A model generated the notes under the pieces. The model was not told where the DNA came from, did no database searches, and saw only the letters and a program-made list of their open reading frames with translations. Shown one piece after another: positions 33,625 to 51,771 of a stretch of 64,000 nt of DNA. Source of the DNA: Adineta vaga (lineage: Eukaryota > Animalia > Rotifera); NCBI GenBank assembly GCA_021613535.1, contig CP075493.1, positions 7,998,001 to 8,062,000 of the forward strand. The letters run 5' to 3'. Position numbers and translations under genes: made by a program. Positions within the stretch are counted from its first letter, which is position 1, and every line of letters begins with the position of its first letter.

Positions 33625-35551
33625 ATGTCTATTTGTTATTTCTGTTTGTCATCACTATTAGTATTCCTGTTAATAGTACACGTATGTAATATGAAACTTT
33701 GTTTTATATTTTGATGACTTTTTTTTCATTAGTGTACTCATGCTGCAAGTCTTCGTTCATATTTACAACAGACATCAAAATGGTTTCCTGATCGACGATA
33801 TTCTTCGCTAACTGATAGTGATGATTTATTCACTTCTGTTGAACCTGTTTTATCACGACGGCGACCTTTTTTACCATTAAATGACCGACGACGACGGTGG
33901 TCAAATGATGAAATTTTGATAGATGAAACAATTGTAGAACGATTAACTGCTGCTACATCAACAACTGAGAATGAAACAACAGGAACAGTGACTGATCATT
34001 CTAATGATATCATATCATCTAATTCAACTGATTTTGAGATAACATCGAATGAGACTTCAACCACAATAGAAACAAAACATCCACTATTGCGACAAGATAT
34101 AGCTGAATATAATGAAACAGAAAATGTGTCAACTGTTTCGATAACGAAAGAAATTACACTAACTTATGAAACTACGAATGGTGATACTAGTACAGTTTTA
34201 TCAATAACATCAAATGAAATTACAGATATTAATACAACTGTATCAGCAAATGTAACTGATAGTAATTCAACAGAATTAAATGAAATAAGTGAATCAATTA
34301 TTGAATTATTTGATAATCTAACTACTCACGGAACTATCAGTAAGTTTTATATTCATCAATTTACATTTTCTTTCTATCGTTATATGAAGGTAACGAAACA
34401 GAAATAATAACAACAACAGCAGCAGCAGCAGCAGCCAGCAGTGAGCTCATTCAAGCAAACAAAACTAGAAACAACACGTATTCCTCAAACAGTACTCTTA
34501 ACAAATTATACATCTCCAACGCTTACGTCTGAATTAGATACAGCTATTATACTTCTTGATTATACCACTAAATATCCTCCAATAACATCAACAGAGTATA
34601 ATAATGAAACATTAAATGAGACAGAAACAACTACTATTGGAGATTATATTACAACTATTAGAGATGAAGCCATGAATATAACTGATGTGACTACTATCAT
34701 CGTTAATACCACAGAAAATCAAACTACTATCTATGAACAGGAAATTGATAATACTACAATGATTTTTGATACCACATCAACTAATATTACTGATGAAAAT
34801 GAATATTCGAATGAAACCACTAGTTTAATATTAGAAACAACGGAAGAACCTATATGTGACCTTTCCTGTCAATGTACAAAACAATGTCCTTACGGTTTTG
34901 ATTTCATTAACGAGACATGTGAATGTCATCCACCCTGTAAAGTAAGTTTTGCACAATAATGTTCATTTATATTTGAACAGTTCATATCCATAGAATTATC
35001 AATGTTTTGGTAATGATACATGTATTGAAACTATGAAGGACGACCTGACTGTCAAGCAGAAAATGGCACTGAACACGGTAAGACCTAGTTAGTAAATAAA
35101 ATTTAACATATAATCATCGTATTTACTTTAAGATCGTCCAAAACGTTGTTATCAACCACGTGATCCAGGTTATCATGATACGAATATTCGATATCATAGT
35201 CGTTGGTATTATAATCCTGATCAAGATGCATGTCATTTATTTGTTTATCGTGGTTTGGGTGGAAATGAAAATAATTTTCAAACATTACACGAATGTCGTT
35301 TAGAATGTATCAGTATGTTTCAAACAAAAACACTTTTCTTTATTTTACATACTATTTCATTTGATTTCTTAGCTTGTGCTCAAGCACCCGACCAAGGTGA
35401 ATGTTTAGGTCGTTTATCGATGTGGTACTATGATCATAAAACGAATCAATGTTCACAATTTGATTATTCAGGTTGTAAAGGAAATGATAATCAATTTTTC
35501 CGAAAACAAAATTGTATTGATACATGTGTTACTCGAATACTTGGTCTTTAA
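33625..35551 (+). CDS. Secreted Thr-rich mucin-like protein with antistasin-like Cys module and two BPTI/Kunitz domains (apparent 1-nt frameshift ~35033)
   Basis: Signal peptide MSICYFCLSSLLVFLLIVH|CTHA, RRRR furin-type site, T/E/N-rich stalk, CDLSCQCTKQCPYGF..CEC. Kunitz RWYYN..C..FVYRGLGGNENNF..C...C and GECLG..WYYD..CSQFDYSGCKGNDNQF..C...C. Confidence 0.85.
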
Positions 35552-35884: not shown

Positions 35885-36617
35885 TTAAAGACAAAAATTG
35901 AAATCACATTTTGTACAAACGAGAAGTAACGATGGTATCATCCCATCTTCATTATGCCATAAAGTTGAATGAAGTTTTGTTTCATTACAATGAGGCATTG
36001 TTTGTCGATGATATGCATGAATTTCATTCAATGTTCCTGTTTTAATCTGATATTGAAATGAACATTGTCGACAAACAATTGGATGTTGAGAAGAACACTG
36101 AAAAAGTGAATCATTCGAACACATAGGACATTGAGTTTGATTTAATTCATCGATTGAAGGAATATATTCCGGTTGTTCATCAGGTATACCTTGTAATCGT
36201 TCCATTTCTAATTCACGAAGAACTTCATTCATTATTGTCCAATTTTCTTCAAATTCAGCTTCTTCAGCTGATAATGGTAAACTATTACTATCCATATCCA
36301 TCGATGTTGTTGGTGGTAATGAACCAAACATTTTAATCCATTCGGATTCTACAATATCACGAGCTGATAATGTTGGTTCATTATCATCGAACTAATTTAC
36401 AAAAAAAGAAGACATAAAACGAAAACTAAAAGAAAGGTTTTTACAGAGAGGTGTCGCATTTTATTGACAATTTTATCACGTGCTCGTTTGAATTGTTGTT
36501 TACAATGAAGTCGATAACGATCTTTCCATGTTTCATCTGAACGAACAGTTGGTGAAGGCATTTTATATAATGCTGAATGGCCGTTTGACGAGCAGGAGAA
36601 GCAGGAAATGTAGACAT
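35885..36617 (-). CDS. RPAIN: RPA-interacting protein (RIP/RPAIN)
   Basis: HSALYK..WKDRYRLHC..KRARDKIVNKMR N-terminal motif, acidic middle, C-terminal Zn-binding CPMC..CRQC..H...C..LLLVCTKCDF. The upstream ATG is out of frame with HSALYK (small indel). Confidence 0.85.
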
Positions 36618-36929
36618 TCTCGTCGAAGTTTAGAAGACAAAGAAATCTAGAATAAAATTAATAATTATTCGATTTTGTAGATCAATTATCATCACTATTC
36701 CATATTATCAAAAATAATTCTTAGAATCTCGATATTTTCTGTAATATCAATCAAAAATGTCAGCAATAAGAAAAGAAGACTCGATTGAGATTTCTTAATT
36801 TAGAGATTATTTTGTCAAATACACAACAAAGTCACGGCAAATACAATAATAAAATAATAATAATACATCAAACGGAAACAAGTTTTGACTAGATAAATGA
36901 TAAATATTGATTAAATAATTGTGTTAAAA

Positions 36930-38862
36930 TTAAATCTGAAGTTTCATTGATTGAGGTAAACTTGTCTTATGTTCTAATAACATATCTGTATCCATTGCAA
37001 TTCCAGCACAAGCTGAAAGAATATTTGTTATACAACGATGTTGTTTAAAAAGTGCATTAATGACCGGTGTACCAGGTGGAACCAAGGGTGCCTTTAAAAG
37101 GTACGATAAAATCGATAGAACAGGTTCAAATGATTGATATTCATCCTGATCTTGTGTTTTATATGTAATACGAGTCATCAATTCAGTTAAAATGACTAGA
37201 TCAATGATTAAAGGTGATGCCAAAAGTGAATCTTCGCATGTATTATGAATTGCTATTGTACTAAGACCATTCATAAATATAGACGATATATATTCATCCA
37301 TCGCGCGTTTTGAATCTAGATATATATATATATATATATGAGTTTTTATTTTTATATTCAATACAATGAAATATATCTTCTTTACCTTTGACAAATGGAA
37401 CATATTTAATAACGACAACATGATCTGGATGTTCATTCGTTTTCTTATTATATAATAAATGATTTGCACCTACCATATCATCGACAACATTCGATTTACT
37501 AATTTCTTTCGAACGAAATTGTTGTGGTGCACTTAAATTTTTACCATCATTATTTCCTAAATGATTATAGGAAACAATAGATTGAAGTTTTAAACCAGCC
37601 GAAACAAGAAAATCAGCAAGAACTGATTTCATTTTTGTTTGTCCACTTTTAAAATCGTCACCACCAATAAAAATATTGTGTTTTTTAGCCAATTCAATAA
37701 TGCCTGGCACTAAAGTATTCTGTGGACTACCATTAATATATGGACAACCTTCTAAAATAGCAGCACAAGCGAAAATATTCGATGGACTTATTTCATCTTC
37801 ATTTCCAGCGATTGATTGAAGAATTTCTTCACTTGTTTGATTTAAACCTGAACGAACTGAAACAGATAACAAATGATTATGGAATGATGTCGAAAGATAA
37901 GTTATAGTCTTTACCATCAACATATCGTTCCGTATTCGCAGTCCATAGAATAATAACTTTTTCTAAATTATTATTTTTTTTAAATTCTCGAATATCATTT
38001 CGAATACGTTCTAAATCTTGTTGTTTAGTTCCTTTTGATATTAAATTATTCGCTCGATCTTCTTGATTAGCAGCAATAAAATCCGGATAATAAATTGATG
38101 GTAATGGTTTCAGTTTACTCATGGCTGATTTTAATTTTTCTTGTAATTCATAATCAAAAACACAAGCTCGTCTCATTGATTCATATAGATTCGCTTCATT
38201 GATATCCCATCCACCAATAACAATATCATTCGGATGTAACATAGGTAAAATTGTATTGAACGGAATATGAACTTCTTTACCTTCATTGTTACTTCCAATT
38301 CGAATGGTTGTCGATTGAGTTAATGAACCATAATAGTTTGGGTGTTGTTCACCCTCTTAAAAGTTTCGATTATTAATATGGTCTTTTTCGAATCGATGAT
38401 TGATTATTCTCTTACCTTTACGCATCCATGTCAAATTTTCTTGATTAGCAATAAGTGCACCTGTAAATGTTGAACCATTATTTCCTCCCCATCCAACAAG
38501 CATAACACCTGTACGTTGTATGTGTCGTTTTGTACGAAACACATATTGATATTTACGTGGAATAATTTCCACACGTTTTGTATTCTGATCAACGTGACAA
38601 TGATTCATTTCATAGACATATTTACTTTCAATATATTCATTCGAATACGTCGTATTTTGACTATTGACTTGAATCGAATAATCCGATGTCACACCTGAAT
38701 GATTAGAAAAGATGATAGATGAAAATAGGTTATAGATTTCTATTTACCATCGTGATCAGCAGGATTGACATGTTGATTATCCTCACTAAGACTATTAACT
38801 TCAACGATAGCTGCTGATTTCGAATCTTGTTTCGTCAATGGAATATGACCATTAGTAGCCAT
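36930..38862 (-). CDS. ISYNA1: Inositol-3-phosphate (myo-inositol-1-phosphate) synthase, 5 exons
   Basis: [80 protein letters not shown]. Confidence 0.97.
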
Positions 38863-38915
38863 GATATTCTTTTTTTTCAAATCAATTCTAAAACAAAACA
38901 AATCTTAGTATTAAA

Positions 38916-39669
38916 TCATTCGGAATAGAAGAAAGGAAAGATTAGATTCGATTTATTCGAACCAAATATCTGAGAAAATGTTTGTTTTTTTCGAACAATA
39001 TTCTTCTTTTCATCATATTGTGTTTGACCATTGAACGATCTTTTTAAAACTAGATAGAATAATCTGCTTATAAAAACAATATCAAAATACACAAGATAAT
39101 GATGAAAACCGATGAATGCTTGCCATCTCGTTTCAACAAATCCAATCAAATAACCAATATTGAAGAAAAGAATTCTCAAAATAGTCAAGAAATGAAATCC
39201 TCCCATCTCATTCCATAAATAATCACATACAAATGTATAACCAACAAAATGTGCACATAGAAGATGAAAAAGCATTAGAAGAAAATATCGTAGATTATGT
39301 TGACCAATACAAGTACCAACAAAAAAACAATGATGATCTTGTACGGGTATACAACGTCGACATAAATGACAATGATGTGATCGTTCTTGACGATAAGTTA
39401 AACAATATTGACAATATTGATCAGTTAATTTCTCTTGTTTAGAATATGAAATTGACAAAAATGTTGTTCGAATTAAATTAAAATAACCTTGAAAAAAGAA
39501 ATATAAAAAAAGTACATTAAATATCACATAGTTAACATCCGACAATTGTTTGCGTTCACGATATGCAGGAACGACAATAAAATAGATAAAATAAAGTGCA
39601 TAAAGTAGTCCGATATAAGCATAACACCATGTTATTCCTATTCAAAGAACGCAAGAGAAATATTTTCAT
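38916..39669 (-). CDS. DHHC palmitoyl-S-acyltransferase (ZDHHC24/22-like), single exon; apparent 1-nt insertion near codon 11
   Basis: YCQYCLTYRQERSHHCHLCRRCIPVQDHHCFFVGTCIGQHNLRYF DHHC cysteine-rich domain, TM helices, GQTQYD and FG..LIFPF tail. ATG 39669 joins the main frame if one base at ~39637 is removed. Confidence 0.88.
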
Positions 39670-39695
39670 CTAGAAGAATAAATCGTGGTTAGTTT

Positions 39696-41420
39696 TCACT
39701 CGTTTATATCCTTTGTATAGTCATTTCATAGAGATTATGTCGTTTTCACATTTATAGTTACTTGTTCAAGTGCACTACTTAACAAGTGAAATCGATGATG
39801 TTCATCAATTTCAAGCAGATTTAATTTATATTCATTTTGAATCGATTCTAATTGTTTATGTTCGTCACCATGTGAAACAATTGTCAATGAACAACCATAA
39901 GCACCAAAACGACCAGCACGACCAATACGATGTAAATATGTTTCATGATCATTCGGTAAATCCATTGAAATAACAAAATCAACATAATCTAAATCGATAC
40001 CACGTGAAGTTAAATCTGTTGTAACTAATATTTGACATTTATGTTTATACATATCACGCATAGCTTTTGTTCGACGATTTTGTGTCAATGAACTTGATGT
40101 ATAAGTTGTCTCATAACCTAATGTTTTTATTCGTTCACAAACAGCAGATGAACGCATACGTAGATTAGAAAAAATAACACATTGACGAAATTTCAATTGT
40201 GGTAATAAGCGTAATAGAAGTAAAACTTTCTGTTCAAATAGATGTGATTCTAACGGATGATATGGAATGATAATGTAAAATTGTTGAATACCAATTAAAC
40301 TTGGTGATTCAGAATCGACGATACGTACACATGTTACATCACGCATATATCGTTCAGAAAAACGTACAATATGTTCGGGATATGTCGCAGATGCTAGTAA
40401 AACTTGTTTATTCGATGGCATATAAGAAAATATCGAATTTATTTGTTCCTAAATTGATATATAAAACATTCTCGTTTGACACAAAGATTTCTGAACGTTA
40501 GAAACATGATTTTTATTCAATCTTAGAATCTTTTTTAGTTTATATGTAACATTGAAAAGCTAATATCATTTGAGAAAATAGAAATAGTCCATATTCATAA
40601 TCGTTTGTTTCAAAGATCGTCCTAGATTTCAAATGCTTTCAATGAATTCAAGATGCTCATGAAATAAATACAACAATGTTTTCTAAACTATTTTCAATTG
40701 AAACGCACGAATATAAAGCGTTTAAAGTCTATGGTTAAAAGAGTTTTTAATTATTTAAAACGTATTTTTTCCACGGAAGACTATTCAGAGTATGTAAACA
40801 AGTTGTTTTCAATACTTGTAGTTTGTCTTTCATCGTAAACTGTCATTTCATTGAAAGAAAACTTTATTCTCCTCTTTTCTTACTTGAAATTCTTTGCATA
40901 ATAAAACATCTGCTTCATCTAAAACAAGTAATCGAATTGTATCAGCTCGAAGGTATTTTAAACGAAGTAATTCTTCGATTCGTCCGGGTGTTCCAACAGC
41001 AATATGACATTTTCTCAAATGATTTTGATCATCTTTTAATGATGTTCCACCAATAAACGTATGTACAAGACATTCAGGTTGTTTTACTGTTTTAACGACT
41101 TGAACGATTTGTTGAGCTATTTCACGTGTTGGTGCAAGCATGATTACTTTCGTTGCTATCGTTGACAAATCTTCCTCGATAGGTTGAACAAATTCTAAAG
41201 CAGTTATACTAAAAACTAGAGTTTTACCAGTGCCAGATTTCGCTTGAATAAGAAGATCAACACCGAGTAATGCTAATGGTAAAGCTTGTAATTGAATTGG
41301 CGAGGGTTTACTAAAACCTGCTTTTTCCAAGGAACGAATTGTAAGTTCAGAAATGGCCAAATCGGCGAAAGTAACATTCTCGTCGGTTTTAACATCATTT
41401 GTTAAACCTCTTTCAGCCAT
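39696..41420 (-). CDS. DDX20: DEAD-box RNA helicase DDX20/Gemin3-like (helicase core only)
   Basis: Q motif GFSKPSPIQ, QAKSGTGKT, PTREIA, GTPGR, DEAD, SAT, TDLTSRGID, YLHRIGRAGRFG. ~420-nt intron ~40872-40450. A probable 51-nt last intron gives ...LEQ|DINE* (stop 39698-39696); the unspliced stop is at 39735. Confidence 0.88.
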
Positions 41421-41669
41421 TGAACTAGAAGAGAAAACAGAAAGCCTGAAAGAAAATGACTGTCACGGCACGGTACAACTACAGTTTCACGACAACCCTC
41501 TTCCTCTTTATTTTATTATATACATTTATTTAACAGAACAGGAAAAGGATTCTATTGGTGCATCATTTAGCCAGTACATAATGAAAAGAGACATAGAGAG
41601 AGAGAGAAACAGATGTCATAAGAGAACAGAACTTTATTTACAAAAAAATGACATACATATATAAGATAA

Positions 41670-41976
41670 TTATTGAACAGGATAAATAGATCTAATCTGT
41701 AATACTATATTTTTTAATGATTTATCATCAAAATCTTGACACCATACAAATTCTTCTAGATAGATAGGAAGTAAAGATCTATACATTTCACCTTGCTTTT
41801 TTATTTACGCTTTACTCTCATCCAAGTATTTTCAATATGTTGTGTGTGCACACCAATTACTGGATCAACAAAAAGTCTAGAGTGATTAACTGAAGCAAAT
41901 GTACAATCGGGATTATTTCTCAATGAACCATATGCCTTCCACTCATCGAAATGAATTGTTGAACCTATAACATATC
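41670..41976 (-). mobile_element. Decayed Merlin / IS1595(ISXO2)-like DDE transposase fragment
   Basis: GSTIHFDEWKAYGSL..SVNHSRLFVDPVIGVHTQHIENTWMRVKRK*, then after a frameshift LLPIYLEEFVWCQDF..IRSIYPVQ*. In-frame stop plus frameshift, N-terminal half missing. Confidence 0.85.
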
Positions 41977-49318: not shown

Positions 49319-49962
49319 ATGAATACATCATTTGATAATTTAAAATATTCACATGTAAAAAAGATCATTCTTCTTTCTGGTAAACGAAAATGTGGCAAAG
49401 ATTATATTGGAGAAAAACTAGCTGAAAAACTTCAAGCAGTATTATTACATCTAAGTGAACCATTGAAATTAGAATATGCACGAATAAATGAAATAAATGG
49501 TGAAGAATTGTTAAATTCATCATCGTATAAAGAAAATTATCGAAAAGATATGATCAAGTAGATAAAATTTGAATGTTTCTCTTGTTAGTATCTATTCATT
49601 TTAATTTTAGATGGGGTGAAGAGAAACGTCGTGCTGATCCATCGATATTTTGTCGTTTGGCTATTGAACAAAAAGATGAAATATGTTTGAAAAACCCAAT
49701 TTGGATTATTTGCGATATTCGACGTTATACCGATGTTGATTTTTTTCAAAAATATTTCTCTAAACATGTACTACTTGTCCGTATTGAAGCATCGATTGAG
49801 ACACGTCAAACACGAGGATGGATATTTACACCAAATATTGATGATTCCGAATCGGAATGTCAACTTGATGACAATATTCTCTGGTCTTTCATATTTTCTA
49901 ATAATAATTCAGATAATTTCGAAGAACAAATGAATAAACTTATTCAATTGATTCATTCGTAG
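49319..49962 (+). CDS. PMVK: Animal-type phosphomevalonate kinase (2 exons)
   Basis: IILLSGKRKCGKDY, LSEPLKLEYA, YKENYRKDMIK|WGEEKRRADPSIFCR, WIICDIRR, RGWIFTPNIDDSESECQLD. Confidence 0.96.
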
Positions 49963-50015
49963 ATAATGATTTAATAATGTGATAATATTCGTTTCTTTTG
50001 TCTTTCAGATTATGT

Positions 50016-51771
50016 ATGGCTAATTTGGCAGATATTGAAATTGAACCTACAAATGAATCGAGCTTGGCGTCAGAAAATGATGAAATACTTGATCCTCGAG
50101 TTCAGGTTTTAATAAAAAGAAACTTCATTTTACTAATCATCTCATCGATTTTCAATTCTCATTTAGATTGAATTAGAACGTTTAAATCATGCAAATGAAG
50201 CAATCAATCATTTAGAGTTGCAACTTGATGTATATATATGTTTCTAAAATAGATTTTCTTCTCTTCATCATTGCATTGATTCTTTAGGAAGCTCGAAGAA
50301 CTCTGAAAGAGTTTTGTGATATTGGCGAAGAAGAATTATCTCGATTAGAGAAAAGTATTGGATCAGCTGTAGGTAAAGCACGAAATTATTATGATGCTCG
50401 AATCAAACTTCGAGATGCACGTGAAGCATTAACAAAAGCTAAGCATCGATTTGAACGTGCTCAAGCTTTACATGTTGCAGCAAAAGAATTAGCAGTTGTT
50501 TCGGTAGGAATTTTCATTTATTTTTCTTAGTTTCGAAATGATTTAACTATCTTTTAGGCTGATTATATCGATGAAGCTGAAAAATCTAATCAAAATGCTG
50601 CTACCTGGAATGAAACCTATGGACAAGCAATTGCTAAAGTATGTTTTGAATATGATGAAGAGAAAAAAGAACCAAAATGACGTCTGTCGATTAGGCTGCT
50701 GATGCTGAACGAGAAAAATATCAAGCTGATCTAGATCAACAATATGCCGATGCAGCGTATGCTGACGTTGAAAAACAAGTAGAAAAATTACAGAAAGAGT
50801 ATCGACGAGCGATCAATAAATCACAGTAAAATTGCAGAAGGAAATGTTTTTCGATTGAATAACTTTGTTTTCGTTATCTTATAGACCTTATTATGAAAAA
50901 AAAGCTGAATATCATAAAGAATTAGATGTAAGACTATTGTGTAGATTCTACTTTTCACTAAACACGTTAATACATTTTTAGTTTCAGAAACGTAAAGTTT
51001 TTGGACTTGAGAATTGTGTCAATGAAGCAAAAGCTCAATATCAAGAATCATTGCGTAATCTTGAAAAAATCAGTAATGAAATTCACGCACAACGAAAGCA
51101 AGGAAAATTACGACGAGAATTAGGTGAACGAACAGCTGGTGTAGGTGAAGAACAAATTACATATACAGAATTTGTAAGAACTTCTTTCGAAGAATCAATT
51201 ATGAATTAAGTTTTTATACATCATCTAGGAACAATTACCACCATCACCAGTGAAACGAAGTCCTTCACCATCTCCTTCACCTAAAATTCCTACTTTAAAA
51301 CGATTAAATCGTCCAGAACAATTACTTCGTTCATGTTTACTTCGAACAGAAGCGTTACCAGCTGGAATTTTTGCTAATACAAGTGGACGATCATCACCCG
51401 AAGGTGATGAAACAACACCAACAAATTTCAATGATCAATTTCTTCTCAATCCTAAACCACAACAACCACCACCACCTATCGTCGTAATCAATTCAAATAA
51501 ACAAACAAACAACATGACACAGAATGTTCATCAAAGAAAGTCAAGTGATGGTTATTCATCACAAATTACCGATGATGAAGATGATAAAACTAGTTCACTT
51601 CATGTCCTAACAGATGAACAACTTGAACATTTAGCTTGTGTCTATCATCCCCTACCTCAAATACCAACATCATCATCTCAGACAGGTACGACTAGAACAT
51701 CGTCTACTCAAATGTCAGAATCCTTATTACATTCACTAAGCAATCCTCTTTCGAAACTTGTTCTACGTTAA
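50016..51771 (+). CDS. SH3BP5: SH3 domain-binding protein 5 (Sab/Parcas-like Rab11 GEF), multi-exon
   Basis: LDPRVQ|IELERLNHANEAINHLELQLD|EARR, KARNYYDAR, AINKS|PYYEKK, AKAQYQESLRNLEKISNEIHAQR, LGERTAGVGEE. Confidence 0.92.

Follow-up and report, generated by a model that had tools for sequence, protein, structure and literature searches.

A candidate spliced-leader-resolved gene cluster, DDX20-like > ZDHHC > ISYNA1, of Adineta vaga, a bdelloid rotifer

The DNA considered here is a stretch of 64,000 nucleotides of the Adineta vaga genome (contig CP075493.1 of assembly GCA_021613535.1, positions 7,998,001 to 8,062,000, or G000:C1:7998001-8062000 in our numbering; assembly 100.8 Mb in 6 contigs; G+C 30.5%), which in full is called the window below. 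Four genes follow each other on its minus strand in the order DDX20-like, ZDHHC, ISYNA1 and RPAIN-like, as read from the sequence and from a Pfam scan of exon open reading frames (ORFs), and a preliminary description of this DNA had proposed that they form an operon resolved by spliced-leader trans-splicing. The gene models rest on exon ORFs searched one by one, and the four genes are unrelated. The DDX20-like product of about 416 amino acids carries the Pfam DEAD and Helicase_C domains, and the best solved-structure match of its DEAD domain is human DDX20 (2oxc, E 3.4e-45) as against 7e-31 for eIF4A. The Pfam families NAD_binding_5 and Inos-1-P_synth are matched across four exon ORFs of ISYNA1. 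The name of the RPAIN-like gene comes from the Rotaria ortholog, which matches RPA_interact_N (5e-5) and RPA_interact_C (3e-4), both under the Pfam cut-off, and which in addition has a weak match to XRIP1a. DDX20, ZDHHC and RPAIN are each present in one copy in the genome. The coordinates are collected in Table 1.

Table 1. Features of the cluster in window coordinates, and stop-to-ATG spacer lengths among bdelloid lineages
Feature	Position	Strand	Remarks
Pyrimidine tract and AG before DDX20-like ATG, proposed leader acceptor of first cistron	41425..41440	-	
DDX20-like DEAD-box helicase	39735..41420	-	exon 1 41420-40884, intron 40883-40449, exon 2 40448-39735
DDX20-ZDHHC spacer	39670..39734	-	65 nt; ends TTCTAG flush with ZDHHC ATG
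ZDHHC palmitoyltransferase	38916..39669	-	single exon; Pfam DHHC 2e-23; stop 38918-38916
ZDHHC-ISYNA1 spacer	38863..38915	-	53 nt; pyrimidine tract and AG 38901-38888, then 25-nt purine-rich leader to ATG
ISYNA1 (myo-inositol-1-phosphate synthase)	36930..38862	-	multi-exon; stop 36932-36930
ISYNA1-RPAIN spacer	36618..36929	-	312 nt; pyrimidine tract and AG at 36660-36647; could hold promoter
RPAIN-like gene	35885..36617	-	two exons; unit membership uncertain
Kunitz-domain gene, last long ORF, convergent	35255..35551	+	Pfam Kunitz_BPTI 1.5e-21; marks cluster 3' boundary
DDX20 > ZDHHC spacer, stop to ATG, across lineages			13-98 nt across 13 lineages
ZDHHC > ISYNA1 spacer, stop to ATG, across lineages			22-62 nt across lineages
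ISYNA1 > RPAIN spacer, stop to ATG, across lineages			182-816 nt in 6 lineages

A spacing of at most about 100 nt on one strand is found between DDX20 and ZDHHC (65 nt) and between ZDHHC and ISYNA1 (53 nt), and it is not found between ISYNA1 and RPAIN (312 nt here, 182-816 nt elsewhere). The first of these values replaces an earlier one. The DDX20 stop had been placed at 39696, giving a near-zero spacer to ZDHHC, and this does not hold: the first in-frame stop is a TAA at 39737-39735, where the orthologs end too, two further stops in the DDX20 frame lead to the TGA that ends at 39696 as the third, and the spacer is therefore 65 nt and not 26. The remaining positions given in the preliminary description were found as described. 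The AG at 39671-39670 stands flush against the ZDHHC ATG at 39669 (TTCTAG, then ATG); the ZDHHC stop at 38916 and the ISYNA1 ATG at 38862 enclose 53 nt with an AG at 38889-38888; an orphan AG at 41426-41425 lies 4 nt ahead of the DDX20-like ATG at 41420; an AG at 36648-36647 lies 29 nt ahead of the RPAIN ATG at 36617, in a gap that had been put at about 310 nt and measures 312; and on sequence reading neither short spacer holds a usable splice donor.

All four genes of the cluster have a pyrimidine-tract AG within 0-29 nt of the ATG. In the window as a whole, a site of at least six pyrimidines in eight followed by AG is found at 0.6% of positions, 21% of 40-nt stretches hold one, and 0.9% of the ATGs are directly abutted by such a site; the chance that four of four genes have one within 30 nt is about 0.002. 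The conservation of the acceptors across lineages, described below, is a stronger argument than this calculation.

Relatives were collected by a ZDHHC protein search and twelve contig look-ups, which gave 12 further bdelloid lineages (13 including the window), among them four Rotaria socialis assemblies as well as European Nucleotide Archive (ENA) and Logan contigs. Their ZDHHC is 57-75% identical to that of the window, the nearest named proteins being those of Rotaria socialis at 72%. Every relative contig that extends far enough has DDX20, ZDHHC, ISYNA1 and RPAIN in this order on the same strand, and conservation of gene order and spacer size, which the preliminary description had named as a check in other rotifer genomes, is in this way seen as a short-spaced layout kept in 13 bdelloid lineages. 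In all 13, TTCTAG precedes the ZDHHC ATG without variation (in L037: TTCTAGATATG), and the rest of the DDX20 > ZDHHC spacer is barely alignable among them. A pyrimidine tract with AG and then A precedes the DDX20 ATG by 4-40 nt in 8 of the 8 lineages whose contigs reach there, and the ISYNA1 ATG by 5-25 nt in 11 of the 12 lineages in which that ATG was located (strict rule), the twelfth having a weaker CAG; a site of the same kind stands mostly 1-30 nt ahead of the RPAIN ATG in nearly all lineages. One could ask whether the genes are simply packed by chance in an AT-rich compact genome, the acceptor-like sites being functionless, and the presence of such sites in a fifth of 40-nt stretches (21%, as given above) is what this explanation has to offer. 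Since the 13 lineages all have the same site at the ZDHHC ATG, and each of the four genes is preceded by a conserved one, this explanation is very unlikely.

In three of the relatives the DDX20 > ZDHHC spacer is only 13 (L036), 21 (L030) and 22 nt (L026) long and consists of the pyrimidine tract and AG with nothing else. With so little room, the outron of ZDHHC and its branch point can only sit inside the DDX20 coding sequence, and transcription must accordingly begin within or upstream of DDX20. This bears on the main rival explanation, in which the genes are compact but independent, their promoters are embedded in the 3' parts of the upstream genes, their short outrons receive the leader, and bicistronic RNA is occasional read-through. 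Such promoters would have to lie within coding sequences and to have been kept in 13 lineages, some of which have spacers of 13-22 nt. We regard the independent-gene explanation as unlikely, though with enough probability left to it that it has to be carried along with the further evidence.

The spacers contain other short elements. One of them, which speaks for the operon, is an A-rich hexamer placed 16-58 nt upstream of the ZDHHC acceptor and reading AATAAA in most lineages; in L026 it shares bases with the stop codon of DDX20, and in L030 and L024 it is part of the coding sequence of that gene. In L015, L019, L020, L022, L023, L029 and L037 the DDX20 > ZDHHC spacer is made up of AATAAA, 0-12 nt, CCGGTG(A/G), later (A)TGACCTT, and then the pyrimidine tract, and the window's own spacer has diverged in that motif region (ATATAAAC...AACCACGA). 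The conserved CCGGTGA may be a 3'-end element or a promoter or factor site. Independent transcription could draw on it, since CCGGTGA and ATGACCTT, conserved in several lineages, could be factor sites; CCGGTGA is, however, absent from the DDX20 > ZDHHC spacer of the window and shows no enrichment in the window.

Since 2005 rotifers have been known to carry out leader trans-splicing. The published rotifer spliced leader of 23 nt (GGCTTATTACAACTTACCAAGAG; PMC3795323, Table 1) is matched at 59 places of the genome when up to 2 mismatches are allowed (21-22 of 23 bases), as against 0 for the reversed control, and at each copy the leader exon is followed by a GT donor (...CCAAGAG/GTAAAT). Leader RNA genes with an exon and a 5' splice donor, which leader-resolved operons require, are in other words present in this genome. 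The leader genes occur as divergent pairs about 154 bp apart (e.g. L002:1340-1530) and as tandem clusters on contigs 2, 5 and 6, and variants of the leader exon with one or two base changes were also seen.

Further evidence comes from two Logan contigs that stem from two runs of one relative, L021 with 1306 nt and L022 with 1025 nt. Upstream of TTCTAG and ATG they keep an unspliced stretch of 29 or 45 nt, and then follow the ZDHHC ORF in full length, a spacer of 35 nt that has a pyrimidine tract and AG of its own, and ISYNA1, which runs uninterrupted through codons 39 and 131, i.e. introns 1 and 2 are absent. These two introns are present in 12 of 12 genomic lineages and in a paralog of ISYNA1 on contig 4. 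Because two conserved introns are missing, the contigs appear to originate from RNA, and they are most simply read as a bicistronic ZDHHC-ISYNA1 RNA that had been cis-spliced and not yet trans-spliced. There is a small probability that they are instead DNA, in which case the species must have lost the two introns together. Searching proteins with the N-terminus of the spliced ISYNA1 of L021 returned mostly genomic exon fragments and no more RNA-like contigs. For the explanation by independent genes, the bicistronic molecule would be read-through, yet two separate runs both gave it as the main path of the assembly.

The same contigs bear on the possibility that the AGs are ordinary cis acceptors, to which an upstream 5' exon that is shared or distant would be joined, as in a nested gene or in one with alternative first exons. 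Sequence alone cannot distinguish a cis from a trans acceptor, and to this extent the arrangement has to be considered; but L021 and L022 are collinear across both acceptors with no upstream exon joined, neither spacer has a donor that could be used, and leader genes are abundant in the genome. Cis-splicing of this kind is in our opinion highly improbable.

Taken together, we consider that DDX20-like > ZDHHC > ISYNA1 probably is the core of a spliced-leader-resolved, tunicate-like operon. The strongest support is given by the spacers of 13-22 nt in relatives, the second by the invariant ZDHHC acceptor and the third by the bicistronic contig. One primary transcript would start upstream of 41426, and the 23-nt rotifer leader would be trans-spliced onto the acceptors at 41425, 39670 and 38888, with the leader end ...CTTACCAAGAG joining exactly at 41424, 39669 and 38887. 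The upstream messages would acquire their 3' ends within the 65- and 53-nt spacers or where these end, and a single leader would serve all genes, with little or no intercistronic DNA. Leader use at these sites, the single promoter and the location of the upstream 3' ends are what we infer from the arrangement. The earlier operon proposal can in this way be maintained for the three-gene core, for which the leader genes, the short spacers, the invariant acceptor, the 13 lineages and the contigs of the relative speak, and its extension to RPAIN is questionable. RPAIN has a similar acceptor and may be transcribed independently; as its spacer is 312 nt here and 182-816 nt elsewhere, it may have a promoter of its own, for which this length leaves room, and that the gene belongs to the unit is therefore a doubtful proposition. 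The same room for a promoter is also a point in favour of the independent-gene explanation.

Several observations weigh against the operon interpretation of the core. A second ISYNA1 copy, at G000:C4:4637500-4640000 (L013/L014) and 77-87% identical per exon, stands without DDX20, ZDHHC or RPAIN nearby and with about 400 nt to the nearest upstream ORF, and despite the lack of a close upstream gene it has a pyrimidine tract and AG 20 nt before its ATG. The acceptor is therefore not specific to operons, and an orphan acceptor marks a trans-spliced gene and not an operon, as the independent-gene explanation would have it. Conserved order alone is weak evidence as well, since the flanks of the cluster are also syntenic and the order may reflect general bdelloid microsynteny extending beyond the cluster. 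The window shares the convergent Kunitz gene with Rotaria socialis, L025 and L030, and PMVK and SH3BP5, a further tight pair (window 49319-51771), adjoin each other and the cluster in L020 (L020:441-2669), a distant bdelloid contig. The bicistronic contigs cover ZDHHC-ISYNA1 in a relative, none was found for DDX20-ZDHHC, and their probable RNA origin is judged from the missing introns and not from run metadata. In an exact-pattern scan of the JGI metagenome contigs, a collection that may contain little rotifer RNA, the leader 3' end joined to the ZDHHC start gave 0 matches, as did the leader 4-34 nt before the ISYNA1 start, and among the contigs examined none was seen with the leader joined at the AGs of the cluster.

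Two of the genes carry a frameshift in the window. The ZDHHC ATG at 39669 and the main ORF at 39641-38916 are in different frames, and in a protein alignment 12 of 12 orthologs have a single-frame start of the form MK.(F/L)LLRSLN..(T/G/A)W. As the orthologs all read the start in one frame, the window has an extra base, which DNA comparison places at about 39639-39634 relative to all of them. In RPAIN a base is missing at about 36582-36581 by comparison with six orthologs. Both differences lie near the 5' ends, in short homopolymers, and the ZDHHC and RPAIN ORFs are intact otherwise; they may be assembly errors or recent real lesions.

Some further features were noted around the cluster and its paralog. 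The DDX20 intron of the window has 435 nt. Most relatives have one of about 50 nt, Rotaria socialis has one of 110 nt, and that of L019 reaches about 1056 nt. Upstream of DDX20, a TATA-like stretch was seen by eye at about 41522-41516, and comparable A/T-rich boxes stand upstream of DDX20 in relatives. Farther upstream, at 41800-41950 on the minus strand, a 48-codon open stretch resembles by eye the C-terminal end of a DDE transposase, and Pfam gave nothing for this stretch at E 0.01. On contig 4, four same-strand unannotated ORFs without a Pfam match lie farther upstream of the second ISYNA1.

The proposed unit can be compared with the operons of other animals that use spliced leaders. In Ciona three criteria have been applied, namely (i) a dicistronic cDNA that is still unresolved, (ii) a downstream gene that carries the leader and (iii) near-absence of intercistronic DNA, the latter being absent in Ciona intestinalis and 23-30 nt long in Oikopleura dioica (PMC1488885). 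For the cluster described here the first has an apparent counterpart in the relative from which L021 and L022 come, the third is approached, and the second is missing. As in tunicates, one leader would serve monocistronic and operon genes alike, unrelated housekeeping genes stand on the same strand, and the evidence is of the same type, that is, an unresolved dicistronic cDNA and very short spacing. The cluster is unlike the tunicate cases in belonging to the phylum Rotifera, in spacers that are 53-65 nt from stop to ATG in the window, and in that the leader on the downstream genes and the exact upstream poly(A) sites are predicted.

Among the operons of C. elegans, the spliced leader 1 (SL1) type likewise has hardly any sequence, or none, between the cistrons and uses a general leader, not a dedicated one, and an AATAAA-like hexamer lies close upstream of the acceptor in many of the bdelloid lineages; a difference is that SL1-type operons are a minor class in nematodes. 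With the SL2 type the bdelloid cluster would share a polycistron resolved by trans-splicing, and some lineages have spacers of 65-98 nt, which come near the nematode spacing of about 100 nt, whereas those of other relatives go down to 13-22 nt. We know of no second, operon-specific leader in rotifers, our own search having been made with the published rotifer leader only.

The comparison with chaetognaths is closer in terms of lineage. In Paraspadella gotoi, also a gnathiferan, about half of the genes are trans-spliced and 18% are in operons, as defined by a spacing of less than 250 bp together with leader reads, and no operon-specific leader is present (PMC12460157). The leaders of the two groups are different, and the same paper, from 2025, treats the origins as independent; it lists rotifers among the lineages with "trans-splicing and operonic transcription", without rotifer data (PMC12460157). 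In the literature that we searched, no description of operons or polycistronic units in bdelloids or Adineta was found.

It is tempting to go one step further and to suppose that bdelloids use tunicate-style spliced-leader operons of which this cluster is one, held together since before the split of the Adineta-like and Rotaria-like lineages, and on the present evidence we incline slightly to this view. The locus is a convenient test case, because the 5' untranslated region of the ZDHHC message would be the leader alone. If the proposal is true, it would affect how genes are annotated and their expression analysed in Adineta and Rotaria, and Rotifera would be a further animal phylum on the short list of those with operons. 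The relation to chaetognaths would then reopen the question of a shared gnathiferan origin of operons, and rotifer operons would be relevant to the question whether, wherever genomes become compact, trans-splicing is followed by operons.

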